DNA from: Thecamonas trahens ATCC 50062
Lineage: Eukaryota > Protista > Apusomonadida
DNA length: 64,000 bases
Direction: 5' to 3'
Assembly (NCBI RefSeq): GCF_000142905.1
Contig: NW_013657657.1
Span: 392,396-456,395, forward strand
A model generated the notes under the pieces. That model worked only from the letters and a program-made list of their open reading frames with translations. It was not told the origin of the DNA and did not search any database. Position numbers and translations under genes: made by a program. This document shows, one piece after another, positions 7,004 to 56,704 of the stretch. Numbering within the stretch: the stretch's first letter is position 1; each line of letters begins with the position of its first letter.

Positions 7004-7097
7004 CACGGCACCCACGCCCTTCACCCCCCCCTTACCCCCCCAACCCCCCCCCCCCCCCCTCCCCTCCCTTGCGGCGGAAGCAGCAGAGAGGAAGGAC

Positions 7098-9578: not shown

Positions 9579-9591
9579 AATGAACAGCTCG

Positions 9592-11696: not shown

Positions 11697-11726
11697 GTCC
11701 CGCCACTTCCCCCCCCCCCCCCCCCC

Positions 11727-12307: not shown

Positions 12308-12412
12308 TCCTCCTCCTCCTCCACTTCCCCCTTATCATCATCATCATCGTCATCATCATCATCATCATCAGCAACATCATTGTCATGTGGCACAGAGTCC
12401 AAGGACAAGACC

Positions 12413-20300: not shown

Positions 20301-23300
20301 TCCGGACGAGCAGATCGGTGTGGACAAGCTCGAGCGCCTTGTCCTTGATGGCAAATGATGGCGCAAAGACGAGCTGCTTGACAAAGTCAAACTCAAGATC
20401 GAGCTCCTTGAGGGCGGGCGCAATCCGGTCAGCGACGCGGACGACATCAGACGGTGGGATGGTGATTTGCCGCCGCGACGAGCCCGAGCCCGCGGCGACG
20501 TGGACGGGCGCAGTGGGCGAGCGGACGTCAACGTCGAGAACAGTGACGATCTCGCCGCTGGACGTGGTAGCCTGCGCGCCCACAAAGATCGGCGGCGACG
20601 CGATGCCGCCGGCCACTGCAAGAGCACCAACGGCGGCGAGGAGCTGCTTGCCCTCAACAGGGGAGAGCGGCGCGGGATCGAGCGCGCTGGCACGCATACT
20701 GATCCACGACAGCACATCCGGCAGCGAGTCGAGTGCAGCCTTGACGCCTGACACGACCATGGCCTTCCAACCGGCGCTTGCCTGCAGAGCGCGAAGGAGT
20801 GCGACGGCAGCGTAGGCGACGTGCAGGTTGGCCTCGCGCATGGCGTGGCGCAGCGTCTCGGCGCTGTCGAGCGCCCGGGCCTCAGCCGGCACCACCCGCG
20901 GCACCGGAGCAAGAAGCAGCGAGCCAGCGAGGTGGAGAAGGGCGTCAACAAGCGGCTTGCCGCCGACAGTCAGTATGGTCTCCATCTCGACGCCGTCGGT
21001 AGACGGCAGGAGCTCGACAAGAATGTCAAAGAGGACCAGCTGGGTGGCGAGCGTCCGAGTCTCGAGGAGCATGGAGAGAACAAACTTGAGGTTGTCCGGC
21101 GAGCACGCGATGCCGCGGATGTCCTTGGCGGTCTGCGGCTCGCCAGAGAGAATGACGAACCGGAGGAGCGATGCGAGGTCAAAGACGTAGCTCGACGAGA
21201 GCTGCGCGGCCTCGGCACATGCCTCGAGCCGGACGAGGAGCACGGAAATGAGTGTCCGTGCCCGCACAATGGCGGCGTCGGTCGGCTCGGAGACGTTGGA
21301 GCGGACGACGACCTGAGCAGCAAGCGAGCAAAAGACGGCAAGGGTGGCGCGGCGGACGACGGACGAGTTCTCGTCGCCAGCCGCGATGGGGGCGAGGAAC
21401 TTGAGGAGCGACGAGAAGACGCGCGCGTTCATAAGCGCGTCCTTGTCAGTGTCGCGGACGTCCATGTTGAGGATGTGAAGAATGACGAGCGCAGCGTCGG
21501 TCGACGGTGCGGCGGCAAGCTCGCGGGCAGCGGCGGCGACAACCGCAAAGTACGCATCTGAAAGCTGACTGGCGACGAGGCTGCGGACACCAAAAGTGGC
21601 GTCGCGGTACGAGCTGCCGAACGCTTCCCACATGCGCGAGAGGAGCTCGCAGAGGGTAAACGACGAGACTGAGACCGAGGTGATGAGGCGGTACATGGCG
21701 GTGAGGCCCATGGTCCGCTGGCGAGCGTTGGCCTCGTGGTGCGCCACGAGGCGGGCGAGGACGTCGGCCGAGACCTGAGTATCTCCCGCCAGGAACGACG
21801 CGACCTCGCTGTAGAGGCCCTTGTACACGTTGACCTGAGACTCCATCTCCTGAGCCGAGAGCTTGCGCTTGAGTCCGCGCATCATGGCCGAGCGCCAGAA
21901 GGTCCACGACGACATGGCGCGAGCGGCCTTGATGGCTGCCTTCCACCGCTGCTTGGCTTTGGACGGCCCAGTTGAGCCGGCCATCGGCGTTGCCACCTCC
22001 ATGGTCGGCAGCATGGCGCGGGCAGCGGCGAGGAGGTGCTGCTTGACCTGCGGCTCAACGGCGGGGACGAGACCGGTCAGCAGCACAACCTTGGCGCGCA
22101 GCCTGCCGAGTGTTGTCCGCACCAATGTCGCGAGCGGAGCAAGGGTAGAGACGACTTCGGGTTCAAGCCCGAGGTCGGCGGCCGATGGCAGCGGCGAGTC
22201 AAGGGCCGCGTTGGCGGGCGCGAGGCCGACGACCGCCGGCAGGTACTCGAGCGTGGCCGACGGGAGCGGGGCGGCGAGCGGGGAGAGGGCACGGCGAAGC
22301 TCGAGGGCGACGTCAGTGGCGGAGCGGAAGGCGTGAATGACTGCTGATGTCGGCGATGCGTTTGAGCCGACAGCCAAAATGGGCTTGGGCCGCTTCTTGG
22401 CCTTGGCGGCCTTGGCAGCGTCGCCCGCGTCTCCACTTGCGTCTGACGCCGGCGACGAGCCGAGCGAGCCGCGATGAAAGTCGAGGAACTCGCCGAGCGA
22501 GCGCGAGTGGTAGAGGTGTGCGACGAGCGCAAGGTTAAGGGCGGTGAGGACGTAAGGACCCATGATGGTGTCACGAGCATTGCCGGTCAGCTGGAGCTCT
22601 TGCGGCGGCGATAGCGAAGCCAGTAGTGAGTCCATGGCCTTGGCCCACGGGTTGTCAGCGTTGTCGACAACGTCGGGCTCCAGGGCGGCGGTAACAAGGG
22701 CCTGCTCGGCCGGGCGAGTTCGATGGTCTCGAGGCCATCGCTTTGGCCGTTGGCAAAGAGCGAGGTACTGAGCCACTTGGTGTGGTTGCTCACGACGTCG
22801 GTGCCCAGGTCGGAGGGATAGACGCCTGGGGCGAGGAGCTCGGTGCAGGTAGCGACGTAGACCGACGAGAGCATGTTCTGCAGCGAGACAATCCACGGGA
22901 CGGAGAGCGCCGGCTCGACGTAGGCGAGCACGCCCCATTCGACGTTGGAGCCATCCGAGTGGAACTTGATGTGGACGTCGGGCCCGGAACCGAGATGGGC
23001 TTGGACCAAGAGTCGGTGCCAGACATGCGGTGCTCGACCGAGTCCGAGCCGGTGATGGCAATGTAGTCGTGGGTCCGCTCCGTCCGACACTGTGGGTCGA
23101 AACGGACGGTGATGGAGAGCGAGCCTGGGAAGGAGAACGACCACGAGAGGTTGAGGTTGTTGGTGTACGGGTGCGGCGTTTCGATGGTCTCACACTGGGC
23201 GGCGCCGATGTCAAAGGCCGGAAGTGCGGCGAGCGCGCGCTCCATAGCGAGGGTGGCGGCGACGAGGGCGTCGGCAAAGACACGCGAGACGCTGGCGTCA

Positions 23301-26809: not shown

Positions 26810-26956
26810 GGTGGCAGGCGTAGGAGGAGTGTGTGTGTGTGTGACTGGCGTGGGTTAGCGCATGTGAAAGGATCATAAGGATGATGATGAGGAACTGCGA
26901 TATTGAATGTGTGCTACAAGTACTTTCTTTTCCTGCGTCAGTGTCAGCCAATCAAT

Positions 26957-27028
26957 TCCCCCATAGTACAATGGCTAGTATATGAGCTTCTCACGTTCAA
27001 GATCAGAGTTCGATTCTCTGTGGGGGAG
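26957..27028 (+). tRNA. tRNA-Glu(CTC), copy 1
   Basis: Cloverleaf: TCCCCCA/TGGGGGA acceptor, GTAC/GTAT D-stem, TGAGC-TTCTCAC-GTTCA anticodon arm, CAGAG-TTCGATT-CTCTG T arm; followed by a T-run Pol III terminator. Confidence 0.9.
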
Positions 27029-27302
27029 TTAACTTTTTTTTTGTCCAGCTCGCGACCCTGCCTTTGCAGGAAGGAATGCAGATCAAGTGGACGGTGTGAT
27101 GGGAGGAGAGAAAGAAACAATGATAGATGTGCGATTGCCGTTGAATGTAAAGGGCGGTGATGGGATGGTAGTGGAGATGGCGTTGGATAGGACGCGCTGT
27201 GCACCGGTCGTGGGGCACCAGCGGTGTCTGGGATGAGAGTAAGGCAATAGACAATACTATACAAATGAGTAATTGGTTCGCCGCTGTATTCAGCCAATCA
27301 AT

Positions 27303-27374
27303 TCCCCCATAGTACAATGGCTAGTATATGAGCTTCTCACGTTCAAGATCAGAGTTCGATTCTCTGTGGGGGAG
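27303..27374 (+). tRNA. tRNA-Glu(CTC), copy 2
   Basis: Identical 72-nt sequence plus T-run. Confidence 0.9.
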
Positions 27375-27487
27375 TTACCTTTTTTTTGTCCAGCTCACAA
27401 CCCTGCCTTTGCAGGAAGGAATGCAGATCAAGTGGATGGAGCGGTCGACTTGGAGAAGTAACGGCTTCAATTCGTTGCTGCTGCAAA

Positions 27488-32913: not shown

Positions 32914-33130
32914 GTCTCCTCGTCCGCTGAGACAGGTGTTGACCTCCAGCCCCTGGTCATGGACACGGAGAAGGAGGCGGACTCGGACGCGGGCTCGGCG
33001 TCGGTCTCGGGTTTGGGCTCGACTCGTGGCGCCACACGCGTGTGTTGGGCAGCCGTTGGTTAACGACGAATGGGCATCCAATGTGATATTGAAATAAGCA
33101 GTACTCGTCGATCACTTTCAGCCAATTAAT

Positions 33131-33202
33131 TCCCCCATAGTACAATGGCTAGTATATGAGCTTCTCACGTTCAAGATCAGAGTTCGATTCTCTGTGGGGG
33201 AG
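33131..33202 (+). tRNA. tRNA-Glu(CTC), copy 3
   Basis: Identical 72-nt sequence plus T-run. Confidence 0.9.
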
Positions 33203-33314
33203 TTGCCTTTTTTTTTGCCCAGCTCGCGACCCTGCACCACCATCGCGCGATCTGCCGTGCACATCATGCTCATAATGGTTCCTTCAAGCCTGGTTTAGTG
33301 GCACACGAGCATGT

Positions 33315-41589: not shown

Positions 41590-43260
41590 TCAGCTAGCTG
41601 CAGCAGAGCGCAGTATCCGAACAATCGCCGCCATCCACGCCTCGCTGAGGGCAGGCGCAAAGCAAAAGTGCGTGCAGTCGCAGTCAACGGGCTCGCCTTT
41701 GGGGTTGATGCGGAGGCCAGAATGGACGGCATGATCATCACGGGTCATCTCCCACAGCGGGAGGATGTGTACCCACTCATGGTCCGGGTCGACCTCGTCG
41801 CGGATCTCGTCCAGCAACGCGTTGCGGATTTGCTTGTCGGTCGAGTTCATGGGCGTGCAGACGCACGGATCTCGCGGTTTGCGCTTCGTGTGGCGCTCAA
41901 AGAGGCCCGAGCCGTCGACCGACGCAAAGTGCTGCGCCGACGTCTGCTGAAAGATAAAGACGTGACCAGGCTCGAGTGCCCACTCCTTCACCTGCGCAAA
42001 CAGCGCCCGGAGCATGTCGCGGTAGGCCTCACACTGTGCATCGTTGAACACATTCATGTGCAGCCCGATGTTGACCATGATGATGTCTGCCACATGCATC
42101 GCCCGCTCCAGGTTGACCGCGTTGTGCTTGTAGTGATCCATGCGGCCAACAAAGCCTCCCGCCGGGCCGATGACTCCATCGACAGCCATGTCGTCTTCGA
42201 TGGTCAGCTTGCCCGGCTGCGCACCCGCAACAGCAACCGTGCACCCAAAGTACGACTGCAGCTGGGCAGAAATCGAGTCGCCGCCTTGGATCAGGATCCG
42301 ACCATCGAGCTCGGCCCAGAACTCGCTGACGCCCGCTCGAGGGAAGCGAGCAAGCAAAGACGGCATCGCTACCTCCCGCAGCCGAGCCCTCGTCGCCTTG
42401 CACGACTGCGGCGAAACATACATACGCGACCCGTCCTCTTCCGCATTGCAAGGCGCACCAGCCGCAGCTGCGATGTCCGGCTGGGGGCACGACAGGCAAT
42501 GCATGATCACGGCGACTGACTCTGTCTCAATCTTCGACATCATTGCATTGACAATGTCGTTCTTCCGCTCACACATGTCCTTCATCACCTTGCATGCCTC
42601 CACTGTTGGGCGGCAGAGCTGATGGCGTTCGGGATTGGGCAAACAGTCATCGCGTGGGAGGACCTTTCCGAGCGCAACGTTGGCCTGGTCCGAGACAAAC
42701 GGCGGCGCATCCGAGTGGACTGTCACCGGCAGTAGTGCAAGCACCTCTTCACCATCAACAACAGCAACGTCGCCACTGGCCGCCGCCTGTGCTTGCATCG
42801 CCTCATACTCGCTCTGGCTCTTCTCTCCCAGCGCCTCAGGCGCCGATCCCCGACCCATTACCATGTACGACGGAAAGACCAGGACCGATCCTCCATCCGA
42901 CGACGGAGAAGACGGCAAGTCGGTGGCGGACACAGTCGACGCTGGCTCTGTCCGCGCGTCGTCCGGGGGCGATGATGATGACGATGATGACGACGGCGAT
43001 GACGACGGCGATGATGGTGGCGATGTGGACGGTGATGTTGATGTCGATGTTGATGGCGAGTTTGAGGATGGCGGCGAGGTTGACGGCGACGATGATGGTG
43101 ACGTCGATGACGACGAATGAGCAGCGACCAAATCCAAACGAAGGACATGGTGACGAGGAGAGGTCCAGACGAGCCTTACCAGGATGACCGAGGCCACACC
43201 GGCAGCAAAGGCTACCAAGAACATGCTACGTCGCCACCGCCATGGCTGCAGCACTCGCAT
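41590..43260 (-). CDS. PC-esterase/TBL-like SGNH protein, type II membrane protein, copy B
   Basis: N-terminal TM, Ser/Pro stem, GGDSIS, VNIGLH, DCDCTHFC; clearly paralogous to 39190-40874. Confidence 0.85.
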   Translation of the reverse strand: MRVLQPWRWRRSMFLVAFAAGVASVILVRLVWTSPRHHVLRLDLVAAHSSSSTSPSSSPSTSPPSSNSPSTSTSTSPSTSPPSSPSSSPSSSSSSSSPPDDARTEPASTVSATDLPSSPSSDGGSVLVFPSYMVMGRGSAPEALGEKSQSEYEAMQAQAAASGDVAVVDGEEVLALLPVTVHSDAPPFVSDQANVALGKVLPRDDCLPNPERHQLCRPTVEACKVMKDMCERKNDIVNAMMSKIETESVAVIMHCLSCPQPDIAAAAGAPCNAEEDGSRMYVSPQSCKATRARLREVAMPSLLARFPRAGVSEFWAELDGRILIQGGDSISAQLQSYFGCTVAVAGAQPGKLTIEDDMAVDGVIGPAGGFVGRMDHYKHNAVNLERAMHVADIIMVNIGLHMNVFNDAQCEAYRDMLRALFAQVKEWALEPGHVFIFQQTSAQHFASVDGSGLFERHTKRKPRDPCVCTPMNSTDKQIRNALLDEIRDEVDPDHEWVHILPLWEMTRDDHAVHSGLRINPKGEPVDCDCTHFCFAPALSEAWMAAIVRILRSAAAS

Positions 43261-43583
43261 GGATGGCGACTTGGTCCTCCCTCTCTTAGAGACGGGTGTC
43301 TTGACCTCTCTCCTTCTCCGCCTCTCCTTCTCTCCGCATCTCCGCTCCGAGTCTCGCTTTGCCGGCGCAGACCCCTGGCGCCGTCCGTCCCTCCCGTCCG
43401 TCCCCCCTTTTGGTTGCCGACCAAGCGGCGGCTCTGCTGGCCAGCCGCATCTTGGCTACGCACTCAGGCAGCCATCGGCAGACTCGTGTGTTCACATCAT
43501 GTCAAGGAGATGTCTGACCGTTGCTGCCCCTCAAGATCACCGCCCATCCCCGTCAAGACATGAGCCTCGATGCCACGATCCTT

Positions 43584-46500
43584 TTACTGCGTCGTCGGAC
43601 AAACACCGATGCCCACGTGGTCCTCGATCCACTTGAGCTCGCGGAGGATTTTGGCCACCGTAGGGTGCTTCGTCGGCACCTGGTTACACACCGCCTCGGC
43701 CACAGCCGTGAGAACCACATCGCGGTATGTCTCATTCTTCAGCTGTAGCACGTCGATCGTCAGGCTGTGGACCTCCACAAAACCCGCAAGAAGCGCAGCA
43801 AGGACGTTGTTCTTGTCCTCCGCATCACCCACCACATCGAGCACAGCAGCCAAGAACTTCTCGCACACTTCCATCGTGCGCGCCACGCTCAACTCTTCCT
43901 CGCTCGGCCGGGGCGCAATCGGCGCCCGCAGCAGCATGCCCGACACTCGCGACAGGCTTGCCAGGTCGACGAGGCCGGCACAGCCACCCTCGATCCGAAT
44001 CGCACTCACAATCCGCAGGGCCATCTCCCGCGTCGCTGCGTCGATTGCTTTGCCGTACTGTGGCGTGTTGGTCCTCGCCTCCAGCACGCGTGCCGCCGAT
44101 CGATCAAGCACCTCGAGCACCCGCGACGTTTCACGGACCGAGTCGGCGTCGTCGCCATAGAGCGGCACTACCTGCCGCTCAACCACAAGCCGCGCGTCCA
44201 GCGTCCGTGCCAGCGGATACATCGTCTTCAGCCTCGGCCGACACAGGTTGCCCTCGTTGAACATGTTGATCGCATCGTACACGCAATACTGCGCATCCTG
44301 TACCACGCTCATCTTCACCCACTTGTTCAGCCGCTCGCCGGTCACCCCAAACGAGTCGAACCACGAGAGAACGACTGCGCAAATCCCGCGCGCCGTCGCC
44401 GCCGAGCCATCCTCAATCGGCACGAGCGACGCCGCAACCGCAAGCGTGTCCAGGTTTTCCGCAATGTTCGACACCGTCACCCCGTCAGACACTCTGCCGG
44501 GGCAGTCGAGAGTGGCCACCGCGGTCATCCGCGCCCCATCTCTCAGCCTCTGCTGCGCATCGGCGGCCTTGATCCCACACCTGGCTCCGCGCGCCTGCAC
44601 TTCCACCCGCAGATCTGCGCCCAGCTTGTCCAGCTCGTCATCAGGGAACGACCGCCGCTTGTACCGCAGCACGTAGCTCGGCAGGTCGTCGCACTCGATC
44701 TGCGCCAGCTCACGGACAACATCCTCGCCTGCGACTTCCAGCCCGTTCTCGGCGCAGATTCGTGCCTCCGTCTCTGCGTCGAGCATGTAGCCGAGTCGCG
44801 CAAGCACCAATGCTTCGGCCGTCATCATCGCCGGCGCTGCTCGGATCCGCGACTCGAAACCAGGGAGGATAAGCTCTTGCAGCGGCGTCGCCTCACCACC
44901 CGGCGTCCGCGGGCAGACCTTGTCTGGCGCAAACTGCCACAGCATCCGCTGCACGTCAATCGTCACTGACCCGGTCTCGGTAACCTCCGTGTACGCAGCC
45001 CGCAGATCGACATCGGTCACCAAGCCCGCCTCGCGCCACGCGCTCAGCGCTGCAGCCGGCTCGGCCTCACCTGCAAGGGCCTCGCCCAGATGATGCGCCA
45101 GCGCAGGCTCATCGCGGAAAGGGATTCCTTTCACGCCAGCCCTGAGAGCGTCAACCACAGCGCCGCATCCACCGCCGATAAGTCGGATCGGCCATGCCCA
45201 CGGTGACTCGCTGTCGATTGTCTCGTTCCGAGCCGCTTCGGACACGGTACGCCGCACAGCTGTCCACCCGGCGAGCCGATGCAGCATCCGCACTCGCTCG
45301 CCCATGTCCGGCGTGGTCGACTCGAGCATTTCCGACGCGATGTCCGTCACAAGCGCCACTGCGTCGTCACTCTGAAGCACGACGCTCAGCCCGTTATCGA
45401 GGCTTTGTGCGCTGACCAGCGCAAGGTACGCCCAGCCGCCTGCGCTGATCTTGCGCAGCTGCGGCCGCAGCTGCTCCATCCGCCCCGACTTCCAGTTGCT
45501 GTCGATCAGTACCGCGTGAAGCATGTCCAGACTGGGATGCGCGCTTGCTCCGGCGCTGATCGTCTCCCGCAGCACCGGTACCCACCCGCCTGCCTCACCG
45601 CTCTCGCACCATCGCTTCATGCAAGCCATCAGCGCCTCGCCGTGGACCGGAGTCCGGTCAAGCAGCTCCGCAAGCTGCTCGGCCGACATGCTGCAGATCG
45701 CGGCAGCAACGGCGGGCGTGAGCAGGACTTTGCGTGCGGCATCGGTGCCGGCACCGAACAGATGCGGTGCAAGCGTCTCAACCTCGACCTCGCGCCGCGG
45801 CGTGAGTGGAACCCGCGCCGCAAGCAGCAGGTCCACATCGTTGGCTGTCACCTCGACCTCGACACCTGCCCGTGCCAGCGACCACCGGATGACCGCCAGC
45901 TGCGTCCGCAGCGGTAGCATCCTCCCCGCACCCGTGCACATGGTTGCAATCGGCGAGTCTGCCCGCGCCATGTCCTGCAAGACAGCGACGGCGCGCGGAT
46001 GCTGCGTCACCCGCAGGTTGCGGAGGAGAGCCTCGAGGACTTCTGGCCGAACACAGGCCATCACAAGCGCAGGCTTGTGGTACGTGGCGATGATGGCTAT
46101 GAACAGACTCGCCGAGTGCGGGAACGACCGCCACGCCACCTTGATTGCATCCCAGTCAAGATGGCCCTGCTCAGCCACACGCTGCAGCACTTCGTCGCCG
46201 GATCCGCTCCGCAGGCTCGGTGCCGCGTACACCGCCGGCCCACGCCGAATCCCTGCTTCATCCGACGCGCAGAGATGCACGCACAGATGCGCAGAGAGGA
46301 CCGGCCGCATCCGCGCCAGCACGTCTTCACACGCCATCAGTGCATTGCTTGTTGCTGCAAGTTCGCGTCCGAGGCTGCTGTTGTCGTCGATGCGGGCGCT
46401 CAGCACGTGGCGCGTCCACATCGCCAGCCGCACGCCCTGTGGCACAAGCTGAAACATGTCCGATCCGAAGCAGCACTCGTAGAACGGGACGCGAATGTGG

Positions 46501-49500
46501 TCGTCAGCAGCCGCAACAGCCATGCAAACCGTAGCCATCCACTCGGCCCAGCACGGCTCGACACGGATCGCTGCCATCATGTCGTCGCCCAGCATGCGCC
46601 TCGCCCTTGCCACCTTGCTCTCCACAACATCGCGCATCTTTGCGACCCGCTGGACAAGCTTCTCGGGGTGTAGATCCTCAGCGAGCGTCTCGAGAACAAA
46701 GGTGAGAAGAGCCACCAGTCGATCACGCGAGACATCGCCACGCGGCGCCAGATCCTTGAGGATCCTGCCCGCCAGCTCGTCAGCCGTCGCCACCAGAGAT
46801 TCTGGCGGCGCCACGCCAAAGAGCAGCATCATCGTCCGCTGCTGCACTGTCTGCGCTGCATCGAACGCCATGTGGTACGGTCGGATCCGAAGGAGCTTTG
46901 CCTCTACATCACTCCGCCCACCGAGCGTGTCGAGCAGCCGAAGATGGTCCGACGTCACGTGTCCGACGCACGCCACGATGGCAAAGCCTGGCCGGCTTGC
47001 AGCCACCTCATCGACCAGTCTCGACCAGCCCGAGACCGACAGTTCAGCGCTGACAAGACACAGCGCTCTTCCCGCCAGGGCATCGGACGAGAGATACCTA
47101 TCAATCTCACTGAACACCTCCGTCGGCGGGTACGTCGAGCGCACCCGGTACGCCTCGGTGGCATCGATCCTGGTCTTCAGCCAGTTGTCGTTGTTGCACT
47201 CGACGATCACAAACCGCCGGAGCGCCTCACCTCGCGGCGCCCGGCACACCGTGTCAAGCTCGAGTAGCGCTCGCGGCACACCATCGGGCGTTGTACCGAG
47301 CTGCCGTGCTTCGGCCTCAACCTTGCGCCTGATCGCACCCTCCACGGCCGGATGCTCGCGGACAAGCGCCTTGGACTCGAGCCCGTCGCTCCCACCGGCC
47401 ACAAACGGCGTCCAGGCGAGGCTCGGCAGCGGACGCTCGAGCTGGATCTTGAGGAGGTCGCCGACGGTGGGCGGCATGAGGATGTCCTTGTCGAGCGAGA
47501 CCTCGACAAAGCTGCGGTGCAGGGCGTCGTCGGCGATGACGATGATGTGGACCAGTCCGCTCGCGGCCCTCATCAGCTGTCGAAGCTGCCCGCCTCCGAG
47601 CTGGCCAGCGACGCGGAGGAGGATAAAGACCATGTTTGGCTGGCAGCTCAGGTGCTCGATGTCCTTGAGCGACGAGTCAAAGTCGGTCTGGCTCACTACC
47701 TTGCGCAGAGCGGAGATGCCGATGCACTTGGCCACCCTCTGCGCCGTCACCTCTTCCATGGACTCGAGGACAAGCCCGTTGTGGATGGCGCCGGGCTCGG
47801 CCTCGATCAACATCCGCAGCATGTACGCCACCTCGCCCTCAACTTCGCCTGTTGCGTTGCAGAGCTGGTTCCGCCAAACCTGATTGTATGCCTGACGGAG
47901 CTCGACGCTCCCGATGATCTTTCGCGCCAAGCTCGAGCTGTGATGCATCATGTAGGTGTCAATCTTCGGCGCCATCCCCCCCTCGCCGTAGCTCTGCCGC
48001 AGCAACTTGACGACCGACTGCGGCGTGTCCACCAGGCCACGGGACATGGGGCCGCTCTCCAGCGCCTTCTCCCGCGCCTGCTTCAGCACCTTCCACATCT
48101 CCTGCGCGGCCGCATCATTATCGTCGGCCGCCCGCCCGTACACGACCATACCGAGCCGCCACTGCGCGCCGGCCACGGTCGACGTCCGGGTCCATGGCAC
48201 AGGGATGGTGGCCATCGCAAGCCCGTCGCTTGCGTGCGGGCTCTCTGCTGCCACCATCAGGCTCTGGCTCGCAACATCGTATTCCAGTACCGCCCCGGCA
48301 ATCGCGCCCGGCACGCTTTGCTCCGTCAGCTCAAAGACCACCGCCTTGGGCGCGCCACCCTTTGGAATCACGGTCAGCAGCTGCTTGACCGGGAACGCGC
48401 ACGGCGTCATGTCCGCCGCCTCGGCCTCGGCCTCGGCCTCCGCACCAGCATCGCCAAGCGGTGGCTCGAGCTTCCATGTCGGCCTGGGCATCCGATGCAG
48501 AACCTGCATGACCGTCGTCTCTCCCGTCAGCGTCGCCCATCCCTGAGGACAGTCGTCGCCGGAGTAGCCGATGTACACGTCGTCCGGGAGGCAAACGTCC
48601 GCCACCACTACCTCCGACCCACTCACCACGACCACCCGCTCCTCGCGCAGCTGGACTCCAAGACAGATTGGACACACTCGCACTGTCCCGTTGGGCCCGT
48701 GCTTGCCGAGAATGGCGCAGTGAGCTTCGATCTGAGCCTTAAGGTTGTCTCGCGCTTCCAGCGCCAGCACCTCACCAACACCCTCGCTGTGCTGCGGCTG
48801 GACAGGGCTTGTCGTGCTGGCGTCGCCGCTGGGCCCCGCGCCGCCATGCGGGAGTTCCGCCGCAGGAGGCTCTGCGAGATCGATCTGCACTCCAATCGCT
48901 GTCGCCACCCGCTCGACGATACGGGAAAACGCCACGCCGCCGTCAGTCTTGCGCCTGAGCAGGGCCACGACGCTGGATCGCTTCATCTGCGCCATCTGCG
49001 GGTCGTACAGTGCCGACTGGGCATCACACAGTGCCGCGAATAGCGCCTTCTTGGACTTGCTCAAGGCGGACTTGACCGCCGTGACAATATCGTCCGCGCT
49101 ACTATCAGCGTTGAGCACCTTGAGTGACTTGACGTCCATCATCGAGTCCGGCTCCGCTTGCGCTGCTTGCGCCTCTCCGGCCGCCCCGGGCGGGCTCACC
49201 TTGTCTGCTGGATCAACTGGCGATGCATCATCCGCTGGCACTGCTGTTGCTGCGTCAGTGGGCGTGCTGTCGTCAGCGGCGCTCCCTTCTTCCTCCTCTT
49301 CCTCCTCAAACTCCTCGGGCTCATCCTCGGTCCCAGCGTTCGCAGCTTCAGCCTCGGGCTCGGTTTCAGCCTCAGCCGCGACATCAGCCTCAACTTCCGC
49401 CTCGGCCTCAGCCTCAGCCTCAACCTCGGCCTCGACCTCAGCCTTGGCCTCGACCTCAGCCTCGACCTCAGCCTCAGCCTCGGCCTCAGCCTCCGGCTGC

Positions 49501-50183
49501 CCGTCGGCGCGTGCATCGTGAAACTCATCGTCACCGTGATCGTCCTTGTCACTAAGGTGCTCGCCACCCTCGTCGCCATCGATCCCATTGCCAACACCGG
49601 ATTGCCCGCGGCAGTTGAGCTCGTAAGGCACATTGCATGGCTTGCGTTCGATCGGTTTGGTGACGCGTGCCTCTGTAGCCCGCGAGGTGAGGAGCATGCG
49701 GGCGACTTTGGTCATCTGCATGTCCATTTGGCCCATGGCGGCGATTTCCTCCTCCACCTTGGCTTGGATCTGGGCGCGATCCGCTTCGTCGTGGATGGCC
49801 ATCTCCTCCTCGTCACTCAGCCCCTTCAGAAGCGTAAGCATCGGAGCAAACGCACGGTTCGAGTTGGTTAGCACTGTCACCGTGCCCAGGACTCGGTCGC
49901 GAATGCCGACACCCCGCCCATCGTTGTTGTCGCTGGTAAGAGTCACAATGGCTGCACCAAGCGCCACAAGCTCTCGCGACGAGACAACCAGCTCGTCGGA
50001 CCTTTGCAGACCGAGTGCGTCAAGTGCCATGACCACAAGACTTTCGCACGTCAGCTGAAGCATCGGGTGCGTGCCGTTCTTCGCCATCACCTCCTCGTGC
50101 ATCTTGTCCATCTCGAGGCGACACGCTTGCAGCGCCCGGCGGATGCGGGCCTTGGTTACAGTCTCCGTGGTTGGACCAGCCAT
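43584..50183 (-). CDS. Uncharacterised 2199-aa protein with acidic EAEAE linker and degenerate P-loop NTPase-like modules; probable distant paralogue of 50642-56704
   Basis: Uninterrupted 6.6-kb ORF with coding-like codon bias. FVIVECNNDNWLKT lies at the Walker-A-equivalent position. Shares the GHLDW...W...S...F...KPALV block with its neighbour. Confidence 0.8.
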   Translation of the reverse strand: MAGPTTETVTKARIRRALQACRLEMDKMHEEVMAKNGTHPMLQLTCESLVVMALDALGLQRSDELVVSSRELVALGAAIVTLTSDNNDGRGVGIRDRVLGTVTVLTNSNRAFAPMLTLLKGLSDEEEMAIHDEADRAQIQAKVEEEIAAMGQMDMQMTKVARMLLTSRATEARVTKPIERKPCNVPYELNCRGQSGVGNGIDGDEGGEHLSDKDDHGDDEFHDARADGQPEAEAEAEAEVEAEVEAKAEVEAEVEAEAEAEAEVEADVAAEAETEPEAEAANAGTEDEPEEFEEEEEEEGSAADDSTPTDAATAVPADDASPVDPADKVSPPGAAGEAQAAQAEPDSMMDVKSLKVLNADSSADDIVTAVKSALSKSKKALFAALCDAQSALYDPQMAQMKRSSVVALLRRKTDGGVAFSRIVERVATAIGVQIDLAEPPAAELPHGGAGPSGDASTTSPVQPQHSEGVGEVLALEARDNLKAQIEAHCAILGKHGPNGTVRVCPICLGVQLREERVVVVSGSEVVVADVCLPDDVYIGYSGDDCPQGWATLTGETTVMQVLHRMPRPTWKLEPPLGDAGAEAEAEAEAADMTPCAFPVKQLLTVIPKGGAPKAVVFELTEQSVPGAIAGAVLEYDVASQSLMVAAESPHASDGLAMATIPVPWTRTSTVAGAQWRLGMVVYGRAADDNDAAAQEMWKVLKQAREKALESGPMSRGLVDTPQSVVKLLRQSYGEGGMAPKIDTYMMHHSSSLARKIIGSVELRQAYNQVWRNQLCNATGEVEGEVAYMLRMLIEAEPGAIHNGLVLESMEEVTAQRVAKCIGISALRKVVSQTDFDSSLKDIEHLSCQPNMVFILLRVAGQLGGGQLRQLMRAASGLVHIIVIADDALHRSFVEVSLDKDILMPPTVGDLLKIQLERPLPSLAWTPFVAGGSDGLESKALVREHPAVEGAIRRKVEAEARQLGTTPDGVPRALLELDTVCRAPRGEALRRFVIVECNNDNWLKTRIDATEAYRVRSTYPPTEVFSEIDRYLSSDALAGRALCLVSAELSVSGWSRLVDEVAASRPGFAIVACVGHVTSDHLRLLDTLGGRSDVEAKLLRIRPYHMAFDAAQTVQQRTMMLLFGVAPPESLVATADELAGRILKDLAPRGDVSRDRLVALLTFVLETLAEDLHPEKLVQRVAKMRDVVESKVARARRMLGDDMMAAIRVEPCWAEWMATVCMAVAAADDHIRVPFYECCFGSDMFQLVPQGVRLAMWTRHVLSARIDDNSSLGRELAATSNALMACEDVLARMRPVLSAHLCVHLCASDEAGIRRGPAVYAAPSLRSGSGDEVLQRVAEQGHLDWDAIKVAWRSFPHSASLFIAIIATYHKPALVMACVRPEVLEALLRNLRVTQHPRAVAVLQDMARADSPIATMCTGAGRMLPLRTQLAVIRWSLARAGVEVEVTANDVDLLLAARVPLTPRREVEVETLAPHLFGAGTDAARKVLLTPAVAAAICSMSAEQLAELLDRTPVHGEALMACMKRWCESGEAGGWVPVLRETISAGASAHPSLDMLHAVLIDSNWKSGRMEQLRPQLRKISAGGWAYLALVSAQSLDNGLSVVLQSDDAVALVTDIASEMLESTTPDMGERVRMLHRLAGWTAVRRTVSEAARNETIDSESPWAWPIRLIGGGCGAVVDALRAGVKGIPFRDEPALAHHLGEALAGEAEPAAALSAWREAGLVTDVDLRAAYTEVTETGSVTIDVQRMLWQFAPDKVCPRTPGGEATPLQELILPGFESRIRAAPAMMTAEALVLARLGYMLDAETEARICAENGLEVAGEDVVRELAQIECDDLPSYVLRYKRRSFPDDELDKLGADLRVEVQARGARCGIKAADAQQRLRDGARMTAVATLDCPGRVSDGVTVSNIAENLDTLAVAASLVPIEDGSAATARGICAVVLSWFDSFGVTGERLNKWVKMSVVQDAQYCVYDAINMFNEGNLCRPRLKTMYPLARTLDARLVVERQVVPLYGDDADSVRETSRVLEVLDRSAARVLEARTNTPQYGKAIDAATREMALRIVSAIRIEGGCAGLVDLASLSRVSGMLLRAPIAPRPSEEELSVARTMEVCEKFLAAVLDVVGDAEDKNNVLAALLAGFVEVHSLTIDVLQLKNETYRDVVLTAVAEAVCNQVPTKHPTVAKILRELKWIEDHVGIGVCPTTQ

Positions 50184-50641
50184 CTTCTTGTCTTGTTGGT
50201 AGTGTCAAGAGAGGTGTGTGTGTGTGTGTGTGGTGGAAGCTTTGCGTTGCGAGCTCGTTATCCCCTGCGCTGAAAAAATGTCACACTTTGTGGAGCACCG
50301 GTTGGTGCCCGCCCGGTTCCTCCGCGGCTCGACTGCGTCTGGGACATACTCATTGCCGCCACGTAGCCCCATACTACCAGCCCTACACTACTAGGATGCA
50401 GGAATGCCAAACTCACTTTATTGGTGCCCATGTCTGTGCACATGGGTGTACAGGGCCCGCTTGACTGGTGCGACCGGTTCCGGCGAAACGTCACAAACTG
50501 CAGCTTCGCGGACAAACACTGTGACGTCGGTACAAACGTCACAGTTGCTGCCACTCGGATCGAGAAAATACAAGCGTCGCAAAGACCAGCCAAGAACAAC
50601 CGCTTCCGACACGCTTCTCTCAAACTACAGACAGACAAGCT
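50184..50641. promoter_or_regulatory. Putative bidirectional promoter with TGACGT/ACGTCA motifs and a 10-bp inverted repeat
   Basis: 458-bp gap between divergent ATGs; ACTGTGACGT-n8-ACGTCACAGT at 50518-50545; an additional ACGTCAC at ~50488. Confidence 0.5.
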
Positions 50642-53600
50642 ATGCCCGGATTCTTTTCCACGACGGAGGTGAGGCCCGCGAACACGTCCGGCAGCGGTAG
50701 CGCTCGGCGGCCTGGTTTGGGCGGCGTCGGCGCGGCGGTCGAGGCGGGGCCGACTCGGACGGCACTCGAAAAGAACCACAGCGACACAACCGTCATTTTT
50801 GCTGACAACCTGCTGGCCATCACCTCGGCAGCAGACTCACCGCGTGGCGTCGCCCTCCTGCAGTGTGTCGGCAGCGGCGGCACGATGTACAACGTCAAGC
50901 CGCGCATGTGCCTGCTCGGCCAACCAACCCGGGCAAAGGTCTTTGTGGCGACGGAGAACGAGGACTGGGTGTTTGGCCTAGACAGAGCTGAGGCCATTAG
51001 GAACATTACTTCCCGCCTCGGTCTCCACGATGCGGTGGCGGAGGATCTGTACGAAAAGCGGGAGTTCGACCAGTCGTACGAGAGCCACGACGCAGCGTGG
51101 AAGGCCATCAACGGCAGTCGGGGCGCAACCACCATTGTCCTCCGCAACGCGCTTCTCTCGCGCCGCCAGGGAACAGTTGTCTCGTACAACCGCAATGCAT
51201 CCAACTCGAGCTCGTGGACCATCCATCTTGTTGCTGCTCACGGCATCGATGCTGATCGTCGGCTGGCTCGGCCGGGCCTCCTCGGCCTCCTCACCGTCGG
51301 CGCCGTTCTCTCGCTGCACATCAACAGCGAGCTCGGCAACCTGCTCTGGTGCATTGCTTTCAGCGGCGCAGCCAGCGCTGGCATTGCGGGCTACGCCAGC
51401 CCGACCATTATCCCCTCCAGCAAGTCCCCGGAAGAGCGGGCCAAGTTCATCCGCATAGCCCGTATGCTCCCCGACGCCGACTGGGACGCCGTCCACACCG
51501 CTGTTGCCGAGATCGGCTCAAGCATCCTCGACAAGCGTCCGTTGCCCGGATTTGTCACCAACTCTGCCGAGCTGAAGTCGGCGGTGGACAACTCGACCGC
51601 GAGGCAGGCGCCCCTCACCGCCGAGCTCCACGCCCTTTTTGCCGACCAGCGGTGGCAGCTCCTCAACCGGCTGGTCAACGCTGAGCAGTCACGAGCGCTG
51701 GCAAAGGAGCTTGAGGCCATCGCGTTGCCTGCGGATGACCATCACGAGCACCGATCGACAACTGGACGGGTCGAGACCCTGTTTCTAGCGCCAAAGACGA
51801 CGGCGGTGTTTGCACCCGTATCAAGCCCGGACCTCATCGGACTGCTGCTCAACGAGGACTTGGCCGGCGGCGACGCCAAGAAGGACGAGTCTGCGCTCAG
51901 CATGGTCGAGTGGATTGAGAAGGTAATCTCTCTTCCGCTCACGCATCACGGGCTCATCCAGTGGATCTTGGGCGTGGCGGCGGGCGGCGGGAGGCGCGAC
52001 ATGGAAGCGTTCGAGGCCATGGACGAGCTGACGGTGGTGGAGAAGATCGCAACGTTCTGCCTTGCGCAGCAGTGTCCGAATGCGATGACCGCCGATGTGC
52101 TCCGCGGCACGTTCAAGCTTCCTCCGCAGATTGAGGCCTTTGCCTTTCGGGTCAACGGACAGTACGGCATCCATGTGATCTCATCACTCAAGCACTCGAC
52201 GATGCGCGAGCTCGGGTTTCCGATGGTGGAAGTGGACGTGAGCTGGCTGGTGGCGAGCTCGTTCCAGGATCAGGAGCTGTACTCGGAGATTGTGCGGCAC
52301 TTTAGCCCCGAGACCCTCTTTGTCTACGTCCGTGGGCTGGAGAGCATCCCGGACCGGACCGTCAAGTGGCTCGCCGAGTACACTCGACGGGCGATCTTCC
52401 ACTACGTGATGCTGGAGGATACGGTGACGGTGTTCAACCACTGCGAAGACCGCGACCGTATGTGCACTCGTCACGCCATTCCGCGCTCGCTCGCCGAGGA
52501 GCGACTGGTGCCCACGAGCACGGCAGCCAAGCGAGTCCTTGCTCTCGTCCCCTACACGCCGATTGACTCGGCAGCGGCGGGCATCAGCCACATCCGCGGC
52601 GCTGAGATGTCGTTCAACTCTGCGCTCAACGCAACGTGGGAGGGCGAGCTGGCAAAGATGCTGCAGCCAAACTCGGGTGTTAACGTGGCGGTTGTGATCT
52701 CGTCACCCGGAGCCGGCAAGACGTACACGGTGACGGTGATGCGCAAGAAACGAGGGGCGGCAGTGGTGCCGATCATCGACGCGTCGTCGCCGGACTTGGT
52801 CAGGGTCTCGCTCAAGAGCTGGCTCGACAACCATCTCGGCGACACGGCGGAGATCCTCATTGTCGACGAGTACCATCGGCTCGACGAGTATCAGAAGGCC
52901 AGTCTCTTTGATTGGATCCATCTCACCCTCCTCGCCCAGCCGCACCTCAAGGTGGTCATGATTGGCAACCGGCATTCAGCCTACGACGATCGGCTCATCG
53001 AAGACTTTTCTGCTGCCAGCAAGATGACCACCGAGCTCCTCTGGTGCCGACTGAGCATCGCCAAGGCCGTGACTGGCATTACGCCGGCCATCAACTCGCA
53101 CAAGCAGGGCATCTTTCTCACCATCTACTTTACCGCCGCGCGCAACCTCTTTGGCGACGAGGCTATCTCGCTCCGCAACCGGTCGGATCTCCTCGCCATG
53201 GCGGCTCAGCCGACCATCTCCGTCTCGAACCTCGCTGCGCTCGTCCTCGACAAGATGCCGACCATCGGCGAGTGTTTTGCCGCCCTCTTTGCCTGCGAAG
53301 TCGTCGAGCTCACCGAGCGTGTGGTGCTTGACATGGACAAGCGCGGCGCATCGTCGACGCCTGGCGAGTACGACATGTACGCCGCCGAGGTTCGCAAGAT
53401 GGCGCTGAGCGAGTGGATCCCGAGGCGCGGGAACGAAAAGCCCGAGGCACTTTTGGTGGGTGCTGCGGTGCTCTCGAGCGATACGCTGAGCTACCCCGAG
53501 CTGAAGGTTGCGTCGCGATCGGAGCTCCATCCGGGCGGGTTGCTGATGGCGTGGGCCAAGATGACGTGCGATGAGGCGGATTCGATAGCGGCCAAAGTGT

Positions 53601-56600
53601 TCAAGTACGACTCGGTGCTGCGGATGAAGCTCGTGGAGCAGGTCGGCTTCCCGCTGGTCGAGGGCGTGGGCCTCGAGTCGACGATGGGCCCCGAGTGCGA
53701 GACGCTGACCTTGGTGGGTGACTACACCGATCTGCCGTTCATGATCGACAACCTTGCTCGCGGCCACACCTTTGATTGGCCCGGGCAGGTCAAGCCGGTG
53801 TGGCAGCGACACTACGTCCAGTCGGCCGAGGCGTTTAATGAGCTTCTCTCGGTTGCTCCGCGCCCGAACCTTGTCCTCGACGCGATCGATTCCCAAAACC
53901 TGGCCAACTTGCTGCAGACGTACCCGGATCCGGCGTTTGCCCACCGCGTGGCCAAGAACCTCACCGCTCACCAGTTTAGCACGGTCATTGCGGGCCTCAG
54001 CGAGACTGACGCGCACTTGATCCCAACCTGGATGCACGAGGCAAAGTGCCACGCCAGCTGGGTGCTCGTCGTCGACGTGTGGGCCCGGGACGGCGGTGAT
54101 GCCAAAATCGAAGAGCTCTTGGCCGACATTAGCCTCTCGCTCGGGGTTATTCTCATGTGGGCGGCCGAGAACGCCGCGCCATTTGCACGCGTTGGCTCGC
54201 TGGCCGAGGCTGAGGCTTGCGAGGCCAAGCTCATCAGCTCACTTGTTCAGCTTGTCCACTCACTCTTTTCCGACTCGCCGGCGAGCGATGGCGATGTCAT
54301 GACACCGCCGTTTGTGGCGCTTTTCCGATCGTGCTTTGCCCCGCTGCTGGGCGAAGTTCTGACTTGCCTCGCCGAGGAGGGGGCATCTGAGAAGGCAGCG
54401 GCTCTTGCGCTTGTCTGCGCCAACGGCGAGTACCCGACCCCAGAGACATGGCCGTCGGCGGTCAAGATCATTGGGCGGATGCTGCACAACAACGCGCTCC
54501 CGCAGGACTCGGAGCTCGAGGTGCAAGGTGTGCTTGATCTGCTCATTGATGACAGCGGGGCATGGCCGTCACTGGTGCTTGCGGGCGCTGAACAGATGAG
54601 CAAGAGCATAGCCGCGATGGCAATCCAGCTCATCGGCAGAGTGCTCAAGATGCAGAGTCTGCCGCGAGTGTGGCAGATCGCATTCTGCCGCGGCGGCGAG
54701 CTGGTCAAGAAGGCGATGGGTGAGACAAGCATGCCAGATTTGCGGCGGCGACTGGATTCTGCCATCAAGGAGCTCCCGGCAGCGGCCATCGATATTGGCA
54801 AGCACAAGCTTGAGGAGGAGATCGTGGGCCTCAAGGCTCGGCACGTTGAGGCAGCAAGGATGCGGATGCAGCGGCGGAGAGATGTGGTCGAGTCGGCGTC
54901 CGCCATCTCATACCAGGCGCAGATGAAGTACATGGATCGGGCGGGGCTAAGCTCGAGCGACAAGGGCCATCGGCGGATCACGCAGTTCTACAACAACTAC
55001 GCCTTGGCCGAGCCGTCCGAGTGGCCAGACGAAGAAGCCAAGGCGTGCAAGAACCCAGCGGATGCCAAGTTTGACCTCGGCCGCCCGGGCGCCTTTGTTG
55101 GCCGACGCATTGTGCTCGGCGTCTTCCTCCGCCGCACGCTAGCCAGCGGCGCCAGCTTTGAAGAAGATCTCGCCTTGTTCAAGATCGCTCTGGAGGCCAA
55201 GGGCTTTGTCTACGAAGTCATCCATGATGAAAACGTGTTCGCCGACCGCCTCCTGGGCGGGAACGTCGACGAGGCGTGGCTCATCTCGGGCTCGGCGAAC
55301 AACGTGTACAAGAAGTATCCGACCGAGGACGGGCGGTCGGCGATGTGGACCAAGCTGGCACATGCGTGCCTCGTGCACCATCTAGCAGGCAAGGGGCTGT
55401 ATCTTGGCGCCGATGAAGATCCATACTTGGCGCACGCCAACGTGGTGCTCTCAGCGCTCTATGCCACCGCTGATGTGGCCGGATCAAGCAGCGGCGCGCG
55501 CGCGGTGCCTTACTTTGCTGGAAACGACCCAGGCCAAGCCATTCTTGAGCCCAAGGGGACGCCCGGTAAGGACGACGATGCCACGTTTAGCACGGGTCTC
55601 TTCCTCACCACGGGCCTGCAGCAGATCTTCGAGGGTGTGACGGTCTCATCAGTGCTTGGCCTCTCGGGCGTGAGTGCCGTGCTCCACCCAAAGCTGACGC
55701 CCAAGAACACGATCGCCTGCCGCGAGAGCCACAGGATCAGGGACGGGATACACGGGCGCATCTTTATGGACGGCGGGTACACCAAGCTGCTGAACGGCGA
55801 GTTTAAGGAGGCTGGAACGGAGCGGATGGTCGGTAACGTGGCAGTTTGGCTGCTCAACATCGACCCTGTGGTCAAGCTCAACAAGAAGCACGGGTTCCGG
55901 CTGCGACCTGTTTTGGATGACGGCGCGCGGGCCGAGTGGGAGGCAGTGATGGAGAAGGCGAAGCAAGTTGCCGATGCGCGGATGGCGACGTGGGTTCTCG
56001 AGGCGCCCGTGCCGAAGGTTGTTCCGGTCGACATCGTCTTTTCTATCGACGCCTCCTCCTCGATGAGGGGTTCCGGGCTGGCTGCAGTCACCTCCTGGGC
56101 CAAGAACTTTGTCGATCGACACAGCCGCCGCTTTGATGTGGGCGAGAAGAAGCCGCGCGGGGCGGTGCCGCGCTTTGCCATCGTCACCTTTGCCGGCCCT
56201 AATGGTATGCACTCGAAGCGGATCTCAGGCTTTGACGACTCGACGAAAACGATCAAGACGAAGCTAGACTCGCTCAAGGCTAGCGGCATGACCAGCTACA
56301 GGACGGGTCTTGGGCTCGCCCACGAAGTCATTGCGGAGGACGCGTCCAACGACGGACGGCGGGCGTATGCAGTGGTCTTCCTCACGGATGGGCAGCCGTC
56401 CCATTGGGATACCGAGATGGAAAGCGTCCACTTGATCCGCACCGAGCTTGAGACGCAATTCAGCGCCAAGATTGTGACGGTCTCGATGGAGATCGCGGCA
56501 GATGCCAAGGCGATCGTGCATGAGCGGCTGACGCACGTGGCTTCGCTCCGTGAGGGGGCAACGGTGGGCAGCACGAACTTGGACGACTACTTGGTGATCG

Positions 56601-56704
56601 ACACCACGTTTGCGGACATGGGCGACGAGTTTGCATCGCAGGTCATGAACCTGGTTGCACCGGACGACGCTCGCGCTTTGCCCGGGTCGAGTGGAGGCGA
56701 GTGA
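50642..56704 (+). CDS. 2020-aa P-loop (AAA+/STAND-like) NTPase with class-I GATase-like domain and C-terminal vWA domain
   Basis: Walker A SSPGAGKT (~52700-52723); Walker B ILIVDEYH; sensor-like VVMIGN. GKGLYLGADEDPY...GRIFMDGGYTKL...AVWL domain. vWA MIDAS DIVFSIDASSSM...T...VVFLTDGQP. Confidence 0.85.
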   Translation: MPGFFSTTEVRPANTSGSGSARRPGLGGVGAAVEAGPTRTALEKNHSDTTVIFADNLLAITSAADSPRGVALLQCVGSGGTMYNVKPRMCLLGQPTRAKVFVATENEDWVFGLDRAEAIRNITSRLGLHDAVAEDLYEKREFDQSYESHDAAWKAINGSRGATTIVLRNALLSRRQGTVVSYNRNASNSSSWTIHLVAAHGIDADRRLARPGLLGLLTVGAVLSLHINSELGNLLWCIAFSGAASAGIAGYASPTIIPSSKSPEERAKFIRIARMLPDADWDAVHTAVAEIGSSILDKRPLPGFVTNSAELKSAVDNSTARQAPLTAELHALFADQRWQLLNRLVNAEQSRALAKELEAIALPADDHHEHRSTTGRVETLFLAPKTTAVFAPVSSPDLIGLLLNEDLAGGDAKKDESALSMVEWIEKVISLPLTHHGLIQWILGVAAGGGRRDMEAFEAMDELTVVEKIATFCLAQQCPNAMTADVLRGTFKLPPQIEAFAFRVNGQYGIHVISSLKHSTMRELGFPMVEVDVSWLVASSFQDQELYSEIVRHFSPETLFVYVRGLESIPDRTVKWLAEYTRRAIFHYVMLEDTVTVFNHCEDRDRMCTRHAIPRSLAEERLVPTSTAAKRVLALVPYTPIDSAAAGISHIRGAEMSFNSALNATWEGELAKMLQPNSGVNVAVVISSPGAGKTYTVTVMRKKRGAAVVPIIDASSPDLVRVSLKSWLDNHLGDTAEILIVDEYHRLDEYQKASLFDWIHLTLLAQPHLKVVMIGNRHSAYDDRLIEDFSAASKMTTELLWCRLSIAKAVTGITPAINSHKQGIFLTIYFTAARNLFGDEAISLRNRSDLLAMAAQPTISVSNLAALVLDKMPTIGECFAALFACEVVELTERVVLDMDKRGASSTPGEYDMYAAEVRKMALSEWIPRRGNEKPEALLVGAAVLSSDTLSYPELKVASRSELHPGGLLMAWAKMTCDEADSIAAKVFKYDSVLRMKLVEQVGFPLVEGVGLESTMGPECETLTLVGDYTDLPFMIDNLARGHTFDWPGQVKPVWQRHYVQSAEAFNELLSVAPRPNLVLDAIDSQNLANLLQTYPDPAFAHRVAKNLTAHQFSTVIAGLSETDAHLIPTWMHEAKCHASWVLVVDVWARDGGDAKIEELLADISLSLGVILMWAAENAAPFARVGSLAEAEACEAKLISSLVQLVHSLFSDSPASDGDVMTPPFVALFRSCFAPLLGEVLTCLAEEGASEKAAALALVCANGEYPTPETWPSAVKIIGRMLHNNALPQDSELEVQGVLDLLIDDSGAWPSLVLAGAEQMSKSIAAMAIQLIGRVLKMQSLPRVWQIAFCRGGELVKKAMGETSMPDLRRRLDSAIKELPAAAIDIGKHKLEEEIVGLKARHVEAARMRMQRRRDVVESASAISYQAQMKYMDRAGLSSSDKGHRRITQFYNNYALAEPSEWPDEEAKACKNPADAKFDLGRPGAFVGRRIVLGVFLRRTLASGASFEEDLALFKIALEAKGFVYEVIHDENVFADRLLGGNVDEAWLISGSANNVYKKYPTEDGRSAMWTKLAHACLVHHLAGKGLYLGADEDPYLAHANVVLSALYATADVAGSSSGARAVPYFAGNDPGQAILEPKGTPGKDDDATFSTGLFLTTGLQQIFEGVTVSSVLGLSGVSAVLHPKLTPKNTIACRESHRIRDGIHGRIFMDGGYTKLLNGEFKEAGTERMVGNVAVWLLNIDPVVKLNKKHGFRLRPVLDDGARAEWEAVMEKAKQVADARMATWVLEAPVPKVVPVDIVFSIDASSSMRGSGLAAVTSWAKNFVDRHSRRFDVGEKKPRGAVPRFAIVTFAGPNGMHSKRISGFDDSTKTIKTKLDSLKASGMTSYRTGLGLAHEVIAEDASNDGRRAYAVVFLTDGQPSHWDTEMESVHLIRTELETQFSAKIVTVSMEIAADAKAIVHERLTHVASLREGATVGSTNLDDYLVIDTTFADMGDEFASQVMNLVAPDDARALPGSSGGE

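Follow-up and report, generated by a model that had tools for sequence, protein, structure and literature searches.

A divergent pair of giant genes in Thecamonas trahens as probable halves of one ancestral AAA+-like protein

When two separate genes match different parts of a single gene elsewhere, the arrangement, known as the Rosetta-stone pattern, predicts a functional and often physical link between their products. It was reportedly set out for gene fusion and fission in 1999, by Marcotte et al. and by Enright et al. The present work concerns a 64,000-nucleotide stretch of contig NW_013657657.1 of the marine protist Thecamonas trahens ATCC 50062 (the window, in whose numbering coordinates are given unless another contig is named), where two giant genes, M (43584..50183, minus strand) and P (50642..56704, plus strand), lie head to head and diverge from a gap of 458 bp. 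An ancestral giant protein of some 3,400-3,700 aa was probably their common source, with M as its N-terminal and P as its C-terminal half. As in the Rosetta-stone pattern, the two Thecamonas genes correspond to non-overlapping, colinear parts of one open reading frame (ORF) found elsewhere; unlike the classical cases, they are adjacent, mutually inverted and served by one promoter region, and a probably unsplit paralogue, U+Q, lies in the same genome with the same promoter elements.

Other described systems resemble the locus in part. Mg-chelatase (ChlI/ChlD) and the MoxR-vWA systems (RavA-ViaA, CoxD-CoxE) likewise combine an AAA+ ATPase with a vWA domain of the metal ion-dependent adhesion site (MIDAS) type, and in ChlI/ChlD an inactive AAA-like partner (ChlD) stands beside an active one. 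An initial annotation of the locus had drawn the MoxR-vWA analogy, which holds loosely, with cobaltochelatase and CoxE-type vWA models lying nearest to the vWA of P, but fails at the ATPase: the MoxR, AAA_3, AAA_5 and Mg-chelatase models find no match (E <= 0.1) in P, in its paralogue Q or in four other family members. M and P are also about ten times larger than these proteins and carry an undescribed helical module, and the candidate pseudo-ATPase of M differs from ChlD in having no Walker motif of any kind. The giant proteins midasin/Rea1, VWA8, dynein and RNF213 resemble the proposed ancestral chain in uniting active and degenerate AAA-like units, and midasin and VWA8 share with P a C-terminal MIDAS/vWA domain. 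An acidic low-complexity stretch is a further point in common with the midasin group, although here it lies in the N-half (M) and not before the MIDAS domain. Unlike midasin and dynein, M and P have no AAA_5 match and no six-unit ring, with at most four alpha/beta units, one of them bearing Walker motifs, and Pfam and PDB searches detected no sequence homology of M or P to midasin/Rea1, VWA8, dynein or RNF213. Plant NLR pairs (RPS4/RRS1, RGA4/RGA5) are similar in being divergently arranged genes whose products are large NTPase-fold proteins, distantly related to each other and probably acting jointly; M and P differ from them in having no NB-ARC, LRR or integrated decoy and no immune sign, and in apparently having arisen by the splitting of one gene and not by duplication and specialisation. 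On these comparisons, M and P appear to lie outside the MoxR/chelatase, STAND/NLR and six-AAA-ring families.

Relatives with both halves in one reading frame

The two giant ORFs stand where the initial annotation had placed them, M with 2199 aa and P with 2020 aa, and its description of them as intronless agrees with the reading frames themselves, whereas splices are added in the public gene models. Word-based homologue searches with whole P and with M 640-2199 gave no match. The P family was opened by a two-sequence profile built from P and Q, the only paralogue of P in the genome (2193 aa, contig C59, E 7e-26), which brought in four environmental relatives; a metagenome scan with the P-family alignment gave nine loci. 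The M family was opened by an exhaustive phmmer search of M 700-1899 against 1.84 billion proteins, with four foreign relatives, all of which align at M 1213-1470. A metagenome scan with an M-family pattern returned no confirmed locus.

In three of the environmental contigs, M and P match non-overlapping, colinear parts of one uninterrupted ORF. The first of these, L013 (10.9 kb), holds a single ORF (67-10755, 3562 aa) with no stop codon inside, of which residues 1021-1248 match M 1232-1461 (E 8e-7) and residues 2704-3510 match P 473-1347 (E 3.6e-58); the M relative P0007 matches the same contig with E 2e-75. In L018, a 55-kb contig from another sample, an ORF of 3700 aa (1385-12487) has the first alpha/beta unit of M (unit 1) at 753-894 (E 1e-8) and the P core at 2755-3533, and L014 carries the M-type and then the P-type parts in the layout of L013. 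A hidden Markov model (HMM) of the foreign N-half matches M with E 3.4e-26. Full-length relatives have one Walker A motif and two helical modules. If M and P are joined end to end, Walker A falls at 2889 (2199 + 690), as against 2912 in L013 and 3037 in L018, and because these positions are so similar, the split appears to have been a clean break that lost essentially no material. No taxonomy accompanies the environmental contigs. Scans with P-family queries, covering bacterial and archaeal genomes, gave no relative and thus no sign of a bacterial origin or operon context.

The undivided arrangement is also seen within Thecamonas itself, at the second of the two family loci in this genome. On contig C59, U (1212 aa) precedes Q on the same strand. 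U carries the M-type module (E 7e-4 with the M-family HMM, E 1e-4 with the P-module HMM), which in this genome is otherwise present only in M, and it matches unit 1 weakly. The stop codon of U overlaps the ATG of Q, the Q frame being open for 102 codons further upstream, and the two frames overlap by about 310 nt (L004:3853-4162, corresponding to about 53852-54161 of C59). Within this overlap the coding-like sequence changes frame, such that the tail of U looks out-of-frame and the Q frame looks coding. U and Q probably form a single gene (U+Q) of about 3,350 aa in which the frame changes, through either a 1-nt error or a true frameshift; the lack of a GTACGY donor rules out a canonical intron.

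The promoter region and the origin of the split

The 458-bp gap (50184..50641) forms a shared divergent promoter region. A 17-mer leader element lies 22 nt upstream of the M ATG (50206..50222, minus strand), and the identical 17-mer is found 19 nt upstream of the U ATG on C59, oriented in both cases in the sense of its gene; these two sites are its only exact matches in 28.7 Mb. The gap also contains a palindromic pair of TGACGT motifs, resembling a cAMP response element (CRE), at 50520..50543, which precedes the P ATG by 98 nt and the M ATG by 336 nt, together with further single TGACGT copies at 50486-50495 and 50276-50285. The pattern TGTGACGT-N(4-12)-ACGTCACA occurs at two sites in the 28.7-Mb genome, in the M/P gap and 88 nt upstream of the U ATG, compared with 0 sites for a control pattern. 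Because the 17-mer and the palindrome are common only to the M gap and the region upstream of U, M appears to have kept the ancestral leader and promoter.

The locus combines colinearity with single-ORF relatives, an internal repeat, a different status of the nucleotide-binding motifs in each half and promoter elements shared uniquely with U. An ancestral protein that fits these features would have arisen by internal duplication, each half comprising one or more alpha/beta NTPase-like units followed by a helical module of ~190 aa, with the units of the N-half lacking nucleotide-binding motifs (a pseudo-ATPase) and the C-half having a working-looking AAA+ site. The U+Q copy would still be in tandem and probably a single gene, and the other copy would have been cut cleanly between the halves, the N-half giving M, with the ancestral leader and promoter elements, and the C-half giving P, which begins 458 bp from M on the opposite strand and bears, in addition, a middle domain and a MIDAS-type vWA. 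Had the segment with the promoter and N-half been inverted, this arrangement would result, with the old promoter left between the genes, where the CRE-like palindrome might drive both of them. We regard the case for an inversion as evenly balanced, because the palindrome is ~250 bp further from the M ATG than from the U ATG. By Rosetta-stone logic, the M and P products would probably reassemble into the ancestral architecture, in which the ATP cycle of P, with a protein ligand held by vWA/MIDAS, may do mechanical work and M may act as a non-catalytic scaffold or regulatory half. Taken as a whole, the account of a lineage-restricted giant family (pseudo-AAA plus module, AAA+ plus module) of which one Thecamonas copy was split by inversion, still shares a genome-unique CRE-like promoter and yields products that reassemble is tentative, with somewhat less than an even chance of being right in every part.

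Several results weigh against this account. The CRE pair is at a U-like distance from the P ATG and not from the M ATG, and a simple inversion needs an additional indel of ~250 bp. The regions flanking the break, M 1470-2199 and P 1-394, have no detectable similarity to the fused relatives, so that the break point is placed by lengths alone. The AlphaFold2 (AF2) models are of low confidence (predicted local distance difference test, pLDDT, of 45 and 59, the latter for P), and a complex prediction of P 639-1160 with M 780-1109 scored 0.00, which gives no verdict, the fold of the partner being itself uncertain. The short metatranscriptome contigs, from two metatranscriptomes, cover parts of P only, and none falls on the 2.7 kb of M compared. 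Finally, the middle domain and vWA cassette of P is found on one further contig, L008 (1-7100; 62% GC), beside a P-type core, and there the divergent neighbour, 39 bp away, encodes a PD-(D/E)XK nuclease and UvrD helicase and is not M-like. Not every P-type gene is thus linked head to head with an M-like one, and the C-half may function on its own. A pairwise match of M to this PD-(D/E)XK neighbour (E 0.023, 19/53 identities) was judged to be chance.

The contig L008, the P fragments in metatranscriptomes and the gain by P of domains missing from the fused relatives would all suit a history in which the genes became independent after the split, with P (AAA+/vWA) acting alone, M a separate scaffold and their adjacency a historical remnant. 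We consider such independence unlikely. Both ORFs remain intact over >2,000 codons, with the unique promoter elements retained and apparently no material lost at the break, and L008 is a 1x long-read contig that covers only 2.4 kb upstream of a P-type gene read in three frames.

The same N-to-C order in three independent contigs from two samples, and again at the U-Q locus, argues against an artefact in which the fused ORFs are chimeras of unrelated neighbours or the head-to-head order results from an inversion in the assembly. Both start codons are bridged, in the divergent order, by a read contig (X1, record 3), and estuary metagenome contigs of 95-99% identity include the gap edges. Were an inversion undone, the M stop codon would stay in place and there would therefore still be two ORFs. 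An artefact is very improbable, even with environmental contigs that come from short-read assemblies and a U-Q junction which shows that the assembly can carry frame problems.

The helical module and the domains of each half

Four peptide blocks, (a) to (d), had been matched by eye between M and P in the initial annotation, and all four are present at roughly the positions it gave. Comparison of the two proteins alone shows no similarity by BLASTP (E 1.4), a Smith-Waterman score of 59 that is not significant against 45 +/- 6 for shuffled sequences (7/200 shuffles score as high), and no retrieval of one protein in whole-genome searches with the other. At the level of the families, blocks (b) and (a) stand as conserved motifs at M 1213-1470. 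Comparison of one family profile with the other gives E 5.4e-7 over 65 columns in the same register as these blocks, and enriched profiles align M 1201-1390 to P 911-1094 over 169 columns with E 9.5e-8 (hhalign probability 94%), compared with E 0.17-0.33 for reversed-profile controls. With both window proteins left out of the profiles, the match still reaches E 9e-4 over 283 colinear columns, and the module HMMs of the M and P families match the opposite family reciprocally and at the right positions; both families are small, with an effective number of sequences (Neff) of about 2-4. Given the profile comparison, its controls and the reciprocal HMMs, blocks (a) and (b) reflect true homology, beyond chance, in a ~190-aa helical module. 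The other two blocks did not fare as well: for (c), the pairing of Walker A with FVIVECNNDNWLKT was not reproduced and is not significant, and (d), at the sensor-1 position, aligns only in a low-confidence extension that is not significant.

Copy 1 of the module, with blocks (b) and (a), occupies aa 1201-1400 of M (45984..46583, minus strand), and copy 2, with the same blocks, aa 911-1105 of P (53372..53956, plus strand), where the M-family HMM matches P-family members and where AF2 pLDDT values are 71-90 at aa 1030-1120. There are exactly two copies of the module per full-length protein, which argues that the similarity of M to P is an old internal repeat that would predate the split.

Gene M lacks any Pfam family in a Pfam scan, as do the helical module and the N-half. 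Its acidic low-complexity stretch, rich in E and A, covers about aa 196-310 of the translation (49254..49598, minus strand) and explains the Pfam PARP and Mediator/eL29 matches of M, which are spurious; a repeat is flagged at 49384-49502 within it. Unit 1 (aa 780-910; 47454..47846, minus strand) is in the structure model an AAA+-like alpha/beta unit with no Walker A or B, and GK[ST] occurs nowhere in M. Every N-half relative retains this unit, and none has a P-loop. Given that the Walker loss is family-wide in the N-half, unit 1 would be a pseudo-ATPase with an AAA+-like fold, as modelled, and old rather than recently decayed. U, L013 and L014 contain stray GK[ST] motifs, which were considered as P-loop remnants and rejected, being mutually unaligned and not conserved. 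Unit 2 (about aa 985-1100; 46884..47231, minus strand) contains blocks (c) and (d), is an alpha/beta unit by low-confidence AF2 strands and helices and is a possible counterpart of the AAA core of P; two low-confidence alignments disagree on which alpha/beta unit of M matches that core. Foldseek finds the M model to resemble tandem-AAA proteins (Rix7, Cdc48) with E 4e-4. A language-model feature search with M gave nothing useful (best score 0.75). ARAGORN reports an 81-nt tRNA-Ala(CGC) at 45637-45717 (plus strand), antisense within the M ORF, which is probably a false positive.

The C-half, P, has a pre-AAA alpha/beta unit at about aa 555-600 (52304..52441, plus strand), which is conserved across the family and is predicted by AF2 as strands with pLDDT <50. 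The AAA+ core follows at aa 660-810 (52619..53071, plus strand), with Walker A at aa 686-693, Walker B at aa 738-743 and sensor-1 within VVMIGNR. Walker A reads SSPGAGKT in P and its form in all relatives is SPPGAGK[TS], with S in place of G or A at the first position, and Walker B is ILIVDE in P; the family patterns hhhhDE[YF]H (Walker B) and hhhANR (sensor-1) are conserved. The restriction of Walker A and B to P had been noted in the initial annotation and is correct. PF00004 matches 6/6 family members weakly (best E 1.5e-5), with Q (21.6 bits) and L018 (21.7 bits) above its cut-off of 21.2 bits and P (14.5-15.8 bits) below it, and the core of P has weak matches to generic AAA families only, such as PF00004 and AAA_22. 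Searches of the AF2 model of P (pLDDT 59) with Foldseek give RFC, ORC, RuvB and MgsA (E 2e-3 to 1e-2). Sequence searches of the PDB with P, M and the middle domain of P found nothing significant.

Two further domains distinguish P from the fused relatives. The middle domain (about aa 1470-1740; 55049..55861, plus strand) is 31% identical to contig L008 and has no Pfam match (E <= 0.1) and no PDB profile match (E <= 1); the GATase-like domain previously suggested at aa 1480-1700 finds no support in Pfam or PDB sequences. The vWA domain, which had also been predicted, is confirmed at aa 1797-1928 (the PF13519 match; 56030..56425, plus strand), above the Pfam cut-offs for both PF13519 (36.9 bits, cut-off 27, E 6e-9) and PF00092 (35.5 bits, cut-off 23.8, E 1.5e-8). 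The MIDAS residues (DxSxS, T, D) are present in the translation as DASSS, GMTSY and LTDG, and the nearest NCBIfam model is the cobaltochelatase-type vWA (E 9e-5). P thus appears, from its motifs, to hold a conserved, working-looking AAA+ site and a MIDAS-competent vWA.

This domain content bears on the function proposed in the initial annotation, which had taken M and P for a head-to-head pair of active and decayed NTPases, born by duplication and serving as an immune or quality-control sensor and executor in the manner of paired plant NLRs. We find this distinctly unlikely. The N-half has no Walker motifs in any relative, so that M is not a copy that degenerated beside an intact one, and the M-P homology would be the internal repeat of a single ancestral protein and not the product of neighbour-gene duplication. 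Pfam scans found no NB-ARC/NACHT, no LRR/WD/TPR sensor and no effector or death-fold domain, PADLOC gave no hits and NCBIfam no named-family match, and the genome has only the two family loci, M/P and U+Q, with no expansion or hypervariability. What the proposal had right is the divergent arrangement with a shared promoter, the distant M-P homology and the P-loop-less, AAA-like fold of M; in addition, language-model features of the P core lean weakly to bacterial nSTAND NTPases (0.85-0.87, below the 0.9 weight level), and nSTAND3 and nSTAND5 each match 1/6 family members (E 0.009-0.03).

Giant-gene fission, with the halves kept under one promoter, replaces this unsupported immune-pair reading with a mechanism that can be tested. 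If it is true, head-to-head pairs of active and pseudo-enzyme NTPases can arise from one gene and not only from duplication. The presence in one genome of fused (U+Q) and split (M/P) versions with matching promoter elements would then amount to a natural split-protein experiment, in a protein family that, like its ~190-aa helical module, has no Pfam model or named relative and is so far known from Thecamonas and a handful of environmental eukaryote-like contigs.

Gene models, close relatives and neighbouring genes

By exact-sequence match, P is AMSG_05513 of Thecamonas trahens ATCC 50062, publicly labelled 'VWFA domain-containing protein' and annotated with 1977 aa, and M is AMSG_11883 without its annotated 3' extension, the public model having 2627 aa. 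A literature search found no mention of either gene. The public model of AMSG_11883 skips the M stop codon (43584-43586) and splices onto a downstream PC-esterase ORF at 41590-43260 (region 41590-43640), which starts with an ATG of its own and encodes a hydrophobic anchor at the N-terminus. No canonical intron donor of the GTACGY type is found at the annotated junction, and the merge is probably an annotation artefact. Two public gene models are accordingly flagged here as likely wrong, that of M merged with the acyl-esterase gene and that at the U/Q junction.

The estuary and marine metagenome contigs that match the M/P locus (window positions 47500-53499) at 95-99% identity differ from it by scattered substitutions and by a 4-nt insertion in the intergenic gap at 50255. 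Their identity suggests that close relatives of the strain inhabit such waters. Elsewhere among the environmental contigs, the gene convergent to a P-family gene on L007 (6354-8921) encodes an 855-aa protein with a weak match to the RZ-type zinc finger (E 3e-5, below cut-off). RNF213 and ZNFX1 are the proteins otherwise known to contain such a finger.

Within the window, the neighbours of M and P are eukaryotic and include a HECT-SPRY protein, a RhoGEF and NYN and Smr nucleases. The first of these is a giant ubiquitin ligase, encoded by a 2978-aa ORF at 14347-23283 on the minus strand, with SPRY and a C-terminal HECT domain. Three tRNA-Glu(CTC) genes, two of them spaced 346 bp apart, lie on the plus strand at 26956-27375 and 33130-33203.

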